Shown: positions 47,009-47,198 of the stretch, in pieces
Layout: each line of letters begins with the position of its first letter
How positions within the stretch are numbered: the first letter of the stretch is position 1
Assembly: GCA_053919585.1 (NCBI GenBank)
Contig: CM132793.1
DNA from: Euprymna scolopes
Taxonomy: Eukaryota
Strand: one strand, 5' to 3'
DNA length: 64,000 nucleotides
Made by a program: the position numbers and the translations under genes
The notes under the pieces: model-generated
Database searches by the model: none
What the model saw: the letters and a program-made list of their open reading frames with translations, nothing else
Told to the model about the DNA's origin: nothing

Positions 47009-47180
47009 TGTTATGATTTAATTTGTTGTTAAGAGTTATCCCCCTTGGGATTGACATTCATAATAAAAGCGCCCTCTGTTTCATTTTCCCGCTCGATACT
47101 TTCAAGAGCGTACGTGTATTTTACAGTTAATAAAACCTTTCTAAAAGGCAATTCTTTACTTACTGATACTATTCACTTCA
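47009..47180 (+). repeat. 5' LTR
   Basis: Direct repeat of 50962-51133, TGTT...TTCA. Confidence 0.95.
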
Positions 47181-47181
47181 A

Positions 47182-47198
47182 TTTTATTAACTGTAAAA
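47182..47198 (+). promoter_or_regulatory. Self-complementary primer-binding site candidate
   Basis: TTTTATTAACTGTAAAA is the exact reverse complement of LTR 47119-47135; no TGG-starting tRNA PBS is present. Confidence 0.75.

Follow-up and report, generated by a model that had tools for sequence, protein, structure and literature searches.

Probable self-priming in a non-chromoviral Ty3/Gypsy retrotransposon family of Euprymna scolopes and in its relatives

How does a retrotransposon begin reverse transcription when no transfer RNA (tRNA) primer-binding site (PBS) follows its 5' long terminal repeat (LTR)? The question is raised by a compact Ty3/Gypsy element of about 4.1 kb in the window, the stretch of 64,000 nucleotides (nt) of Euprymna scolopes DNA analyzed here (assembly GCA_053919585.1, contig CM132793.1), whose positions serve as coordinates. 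An earlier note on this DNA had described a PBS complementary to the LTR of the same element and had suggested that an animal Gypsy lineage might prime itself in the way of the fission yeast element Tf1. The covariation of LTR and PBS in ten families, presented below, supports that interpretation. It makes it likely that Tf1-like self-priming, without a tRNA, operates in a widely spread, non-chromoviral clade of animal Gypsy elements, in which the primer would contain the poly(A) signal of the element. The argument turns on the following features.

47009-47180, + strand: 5' LTR of 172 bp with TG..CA ends, a direct repeat with 50962-51133; intact copies have LTRs of the identical length of 172 bp
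47119-47135, + strand: LTR arm, the proposed self-primer, complement of 47182-47198; the poly(A) signal AATAAA(A), 47130-47135, makes up its final 6-7 nt
47181, + strand: spacer A, 1 nt between LTR end and PBS; an A in 10 of 10 families
47182-47198, + strand: PBS complementary to the element's own LTR, from comparison with the LTR arm

The segments 47119-47135 (TTTTACAGTTAATAAAA) and 47182-47198 (TTTTATTAACTGTAAAA) are exact reverse complements over 17 nt. The duplex cannot be extended on either side, A47118/A47199 and C47136/A47181 being unpaired. The PBS arm starts 2 nt past the terminal CA of the LTR, with A47181 as the lone spacer, and no TGG is present within 30 nt of the LTR end; the first one is found in the context of the gag start codon (ATGGAT at 47213). 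Re-reading of the sequence thus bore out the perfect 17-nt complement, the one-nt gap after the LTR and the missing TGG-type PBS that the earlier note had reported. With its 17 nt, the repeat exceeds the complement of at least 10 nt of the own LTR, located 0-5 nt after the 5' LTR, from which self-priming is predicted. When the LTR of the window was shuffled 5000 times with its dinucleotides preserved, as was done for each LTR, a complement of at least 17 nt anchored no more than 5 nt from the LTR end was obtained once.

Pairing of the LTR arm and the PBS in ten families

A search of the genome with the LTR and leader returned 671 candidate places, and the 40 that were scored are 98-100% identical. 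Dozens of copies of this family, Fam1, carry uninterrupted pol frames of 932 amino acids (aa) and identical LTR pairs; Fam1 is a young, large and abundant family. Both arms are unchanged in every readable copy (of the 30 first fetched), and the A-run after the PBS alone varies.

As the Fam1 copies are too young to reveal covariation, diverged relatives were sought. Searching the genome with a reverse transcriptase (RT) homologue of 49% identity uncovered FamA, FamB and FamC, which are about 4 kb long, encode Gag and Pol in one fused frame of 1220-1237 aa, are bounded by LTRs of 173-234 bp and show target duplications of 5 bp. Relatives outside this genome were reached via RT and gag homologue searches: L048 from a JGI metagenome, L051 from a Logan run, L052, L053 and L055 from ENA metagenome contigs, which were assembled as rotated circles, and L054 from the nematode Trichinella murrelli (GCA_001447425.1). 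Together with Fam1 these make ten families, included on the basis of a readable LTR/leader junction; the set holds no tRNA-primed sister family as a negative control. The 5' end of L049/L050 (TARA) is unreadable, and this relative was left out of the family count. In this ocean metagenome relative (L049 1-900, L050 1-700; 51% gag identity), gag seemingly follows directly after ..ATCACA, past an internal duplication of about 100 nt. The Euprymna genome holds at least three further families besides the four that were read.

The layout is the same in all ten families: the LTR ends in CA, an A follows, and then comes the complement of a stretch of the own LTR located 19-67 nt upstream, with sequences that differ between families. 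Four of the arm pairs are as follows.

Fam1 (window): LTR arm TTTTACAGTTAATAAAA; PBS TTTTATTAACTGTAAAA
FamA: LTR arm TTAGTGAAATAAA; PBS TTTATTTCACTAA
L048: LTR arm TTTAAGTAGGATAAA; PBS TTTATCCTACTTAAA
L055: LTR arm TTCAGTAGAATAAA; PBS TTTATTCTACTGAA

Counted from the PBS start, positions 1-12 form Watson-Crick pairs in 10 of 10 families, apart from one C.A in the Trichinella copy, and two or three types of Watson-Crick pair occur at seven positions (4-8, 11 and 12). Positions 13-16 are paired in seven to eight of the ten families. L052 and L053 differ by a double change of one G:C pair to A:T. The contiguous duplex of a PBS with the arm of its own family measures 8-18 nt (8+7 nt around one mismatch in L054, 12-18 nt in the nine others), against 4.6 nt on average and 10 nt at most when PBS and arm are taken from different families. 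Sliding the register by 1-3 nt leaves at most 3 nt of pairing. These pairs were counted by script; MAFFT put the PBS registers TTTTATT and TTTATT out of phase. Compensatory change among relatives, which the earlier note had named as a check on its proposal, is what the ten families display, since each of them pairs LTR with PBS using different sequences.

The LTR arm ends exactly at AATAAA(A) in all of the families except L048, where the hexamer is GATAAA, and in FamA, FamB and FamC the hexamer at the arm end is the sole one of its kind in the LTR. On the other side of the PBS, the gag ATG is located 3-32 nt past the duplex, and the only TGG is that of the ATG-GA(T/G) start. The families share no sequence around the gag ATG, and beyond it their sequences diverge, as they encode different N-termini. 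Given this proximity of gag to the duplex and the lack of shared sequence there, the leaders are judged to hold no alternative PBS and to leave no room for a tRNA site.

A candidate priming mechanism and its alternatives

In the proposed mechanism, the leader RNA would fold back such that 12-18 nt of the repeat region (R) ending in AAUAAA(A), 47119-47135 in the window, pair with 47182-47198. The RNase H of the element would cut right after AAUAAA(A), as in Tf1, and the freed 3'-OH would be extended over the spacer A, the unique 5' region (U5) and the remaining R, some 46 nt, to yield minus-strand strong-stop DNA. This DNA would jump to the 3' R, with which it would share about 23-29 nt of homologous sequence reaching to the putative poly(A) site near 47158-47164. 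Plus-strand strong-stop synthesis would copy the RNA primer, whereby the PBS would be rewritten from the LTR in each cycle, and it is this rewriting that would make the complementarity perfect and family-specific. The variable extension of the duplex to 17-19 nt could follow if some transcripts start further upstream. The arm-PBS duplex would, in addition, hide the cap-proximal poly(A) signal. The order of CA, one nt and PBS corresponds to a 2-nt overhang beyond CA, as in retroviruses, the integrase of which uses 2 nt beyond CA in 3' processing.

Two further features of the LTR bear on these steps.

47136-47148, + strand: hairpin CCUUU-CUA-AAAGG, adjoining the proposed cleavage site on its 3' side; part of the predicted minimum-energy fold, weak in isolation
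47158-47164, + strand: putative poly(A) site and R/U5 border, from ends and branches of RNA-library contigs

The arm-PBS helix dominates the predicted leader folds, with z-scores of -2.6 to -7.2. A hairpin of 3-7 bp begins 0-2 nt past the LTR arm in seven of nine families, with differing sequences; it may be an analogue of the stem-loops required for Tf1 priming, or an element of the poly(A) site.

The element is present in RNA libraries of several studies, including poly(A)+ libraries. Raw poly(A)+ reads cover it about 10- to 30-fold, with a sense-strand bias that rises toward the 3' end. Contigs of poly(A)-selected libraries branch or end 23-29 nt past the arm, at 47158-47164: record 1 of X13 ends at 47158, record 13 of X5 ends at 51117 (equivalent to 47164) and is followed by 33 unmatched letters, and record 10 of X5 begins at 47135, which is 47165 minus 30, as for a branch at k=31, and runs into the leader at high depth. 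From these contigs we infer a poly(A) site at 47158-47164. In one oligo-dT library the leader segment reaches the depth of the 3' end, a pattern suggestive of internal priming by oligo-dT. As to the transcription start, an initiator-like T/C-A-G(G)-T motif is located 11-12 nt before the arm end in eight of the ten families, and G and T occupy positions -10 and -9 in nine of them. Transcription may start at or just upstream of the arm. The earlier note had considered a start at A47125 with a primer of 11 nt; the core of 12 bp, with 17-19 bp in five families, means that the start may lie at or upstream of 47119. Reading AATAAAA as a TATA box was rated unlikely, as almost no R would remain.

Several points weigh against self-priming from the 5' end of the RNA. 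Cleavage and priming are deduced from sequence. The reads were evaluated in 146-nt bins at about 20-fold depth, with no reported accumulation of starts in the LTR; read-through transcripts are indicated by some reads that extend across the LTR start into unrelated flanking DNA. Pairing past 12 nt, to 18-19 nt, exceeds the 11 nt of Tf1 and fits no single fixed start. The arm is A/T-rich, and the share of the match contributed by TTTATT/AATAAA is expected in any element with both motifs. The Trichinella copy has just 19 nt between arm and PBS, in addition to its mismatch. The PBSs were compared with LTR arms, host tRNA sequences not being included. Finally, if transcription started downstream of AATAAA, the arm would be located in the unique 3' region (U3), away from the RNA 5' end.

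Such a downstream start would let the PBS pair with the arm's U3 copy, close to the 3' end of its own RNA or of one co-packaged with it, in a different, undescribed self-priming geometry or as a circularising contact. TATA-like runs in L052, L053 and L048, which lie inside the arm or just upstream of it, would suit it, the binned reads do not map the start site, and in some retroviruses the poly(A) signal is located in U3 and R measures 15-21 nt. We nevertheless consider this arrangement unlikely: it would leave less than 25-29 nt of R in Fam1 and just a few in L054, no TATA-like motif occurs in FamA, FamB and FamC, and the initiator-like motif stands before the arm end in eight of ten families. 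Record 10 of X5, running from 47135 into the leader, also points away from it; this point is weak because the start of the record is a k-mer branch artefact and not the end of a molecule. Alternatively, the duplex might only occlude the promoter-proximal poly(A) signal, like the poly(A) hairpin of HIV-1, a human immunodeficiency virus, while another primer is used. The arm does end at AATAAA or GATAAA in 10 of 10 families, the 3' partner strand is found in the leader only, so that just the 5' copy of the signal would be masked, and covariation alone cannot tell occlusion from priming. However, there is no other primer site, with gag so close to the duplex and nothing else conserved; a masking helix would need no fixed start 2 nt past CA, which is seen in all ten families; and a perfect match specific to each family is the expected product of primer copying in plus-strand synthesis. 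Occlusion as the sole function is quite unlikely, and occlusion and priming can coexist.

It is very improbable that a host small RNA (a tRNA 3' end, a tRNA half or a 5' tRNA fragment) acts as the primer and that the match with the LTR is incidental. Beyond TTTATT the PBSs of the ten families differ, each matching its own LTR, which a shared host tRNA cannot explain; moreover, the sites lack TGG and are A/T-rich, unlike cytoplasmic tRNAs. This base composition is what speaks for an inverted repeat that arose by chance in A/T-rich DNA: A or T make up 15 of the 17 paired bases in the window. Yet in each of nine families only 0-2 of the 5000 shuffled LTRs equalled the observed duplex length (132 did so for the Trichinella copy with its mismatch), and the recurrence of the repeat in one register across ten independent families renders chance scarcely credible.

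Structure of the element in the window

The remaining features of the element are listed below.

47199-47212, + strand: A-run between PBS and gag; 13-28 A in other copies
47213-48015, + strand: gag with two CCHC knuckles; in the window copy a stop at 47606-47608 interrupts it and its length differs near 47911
48016-50813, + strand: pol (protease, RT, RNase H and integrase, without chromodomain); frame of the window copy disrupted between 49362 and 49452
50950-50961, + strand: polypurine tract GGACGGGGAAAA, adjoining the 3' LTR in all copies examined
50962-51133, + strand: 3' LTR of 172 bp with TG..CA ends, sharing 92% identity with the 5' LTR; the 17-nt arm recurs at 51072-51088

The order protease-RT-RNase H-integrase, the TG..CA LTRs, the short target duplications and the polypurine tract place the element in Ty3/Gypsy (Metaviridae). 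In the intact copy L045, gag encodes 267 aa with CCHC knuckles at residues 218 and 238, and pol encodes 932 aa, in which a Pfam scan identified protease, RT, RNase H and the zinc-binding and core domains of integrase; the best PDB match of pol is Ty3. The chromodomain PF00385 gave no match at E<=1 in four families and is absent from the Pfam lists of the 120 best relatives, so that the two-knuckle Gag without a chromodomain described in the earlier note stands. The gag and pol genes of Fam1 share one frame, in which a single stop separates them (48013-48019 in the window, 2432-2434 in L045).

The copy in the window is dead, as is clear from the interruptions in gag, the broken pol frame, the LTR identity of 92% and the lack of a target duplication (47004-47008 compared with 51134-51138). 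Its 5' LTR matches the young family although its LTR pair is only 92% identical. Target duplications of 5 bp were found in L031, L033, L034, L036 and L044 (GGGTA in L044), whereas L043 and L045 have none in spite of LTR pairs that are 99-100% identical. Recombination among the many near-identical copies is the likely cause of the absent duplications. Slightly different and more decayed Fam1-like copies (C6:151731411-151733447, C14:96250827-96252863 and others) score marginally higher against the homologue P0008 and may constitute an older subfamily.

A second A-run, of about 60 A, is located upstream of the polypurine tract (50863-50922), and RNA-library contigs break at both A-runs. The Fam1 copy L046 lies within an array of short tandem repeats with a period of about 25 nt (L046 899-1419 and 6101-6622); the 520-bp LTRs that a first self-alignment had indicated for it were rejected as being this array. 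No tRNA genes are present in the window. A dense cluster of at least 60 tRNA genes is located at C11:1680000-2160000, on the chromosome-scale contig of the window.

Known self-primers and the placement of the families

In Tf1, a short 5' piece of the element's RNA, derived from the LTR, pairs with the PBS adjoining U5, and a cut by RNase H is proposed to free the primer (PMC4600332). Like the families described here, Tf1/Tf2 and Tj1, the self-primed Ty3/Gypsy chromoviruses of fission yeasts, lack a tRNA PBS and have a U5-adjacent PBS that pairs with their own RNA. The pairing of 11 nt in Tf1 compares with a core of 12 bp, and up to 18-19 bp, in the present families, which further differ from these elements in having a primer that ends in the poly(A) signal, no chromodomain, two CCHC knuckles in Gag and animal hosts. 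In structure-based alignments, the RT-RNase H region is 26-28% identical to that of Tf2, against 29-32% for Drosophila 297, 412, gypsy, opus and 17.6 and for Ty3, with 297, 412, gypsy and opus at 30-32%; judged by these identities, the families are not specially close to known self-primers.

Self-priming has also been predicted from LTR-PBS complementarity for sushi-ichi, the vertebrate Tf1/sushi elements and the Tcn1 clade (PMC6317226, citing Butler et al. 2001). These are chromoviruses that group with Tf1; the present families lack a chromodomain. For the TAR lineage of plant Ty1/copia elements (Houba, Osr-1), the prediction is based on a complement of at least 10 nt located 0-5 nt after the 5' LTR (PMC6317226). 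That lineage belongs to another superfamily, with another domain order and other hosts, and the prediction implies that the trait of self-priming arose more than once. In HIV-1, an RNA helix likewise covers the AAUAAA of the 5' R, but that helix forms a local hairpin apart from the tRNA-Lys3 PBS, whereas here the PBS itself is the partner strand.

Like the present families, the Mag lineage, including the Steamer-like elements of bivalves, has animal hosts, a compact length of 4-5 kb and two Gag knuckles; its LTRs of about 140-210 bp have TGT.. termini, contain a clear AATAAA and no conserved TATA box, and are flanked by target duplications of 5 bp (PMC3601003, PMC3286476, PMC8905726). The members described have tRNA-Leu, tRNA-Ser or tRNA-Asn sites starting with TGG (PMC8905726, PMC3286476, PMC11046912), which none of the present families has. 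The label 'Mag-like' is unproven; it fits by LTR size and termini and by the two CCHC knuckles only, the tRNA-Leu/Ser site that also characterizes the lineage being absent. Identity with Troyka was rejected, as Troyka has CG..CG ends and 3-bp duplications.

The hosts in which the duplex was verified are a mollusc and a nematode, and RT relatives occur in a spider, a prawn, a sea anemone, a fluke and a sea slug. In an RT-RNase H tree of 42 relatives, which holds no named reference lineages and in which duplex status was read for seven rows, these seven verified-duplex rows fall on both sides of the midpoint root and neighbour the sequences of the latter animals.

In the literature that could be searched, only Tf1 has been demonstrated to prime itself; for Tf2, Tj1, fungal relatives, sushi and the Tcn1 clade, as well as for the TAR lineage of plant copia elements, self-priming has been inferred (PMC4600332, PMC6317226). 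No description of the present self-priming Gypsy clade was found in that literature, which excludes subscription journals and Repbase reports, so that an earlier description is possible. The sequence comparisons give good support to the view that the families would represent a known mechanism, Tf1-type self-priming, in a lineage for which no description was found. More tentatively, and with slightly less than even confidence, we suggest that a whole non-chromoviral clade of animal Ty3/Gypsy elements may have dropped tRNA priming independently of Tf1/sushi. The 3' end of its self-primer would be its own poly(A) signal, and a single 12-bp helix would combine three roles, those of primer-template duplex, RNase H cleavage site and mask of the cap-proximal poly(A) signal.

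Because Fam1 is young and very abundant, the idea is directly testable on host RNA. If it is true, tRNA-independent priming arose repeatedly, and LTR annotation tools that require a tRNA PBS would miss or misjudge such elements. The elements would also escape host defences aimed at tRNA primer sites, of which 3' tRNA fragments are an example (PMC7472051). The overlap of primer and poly(A) signal would tie two steps of the life cycle to one motif.
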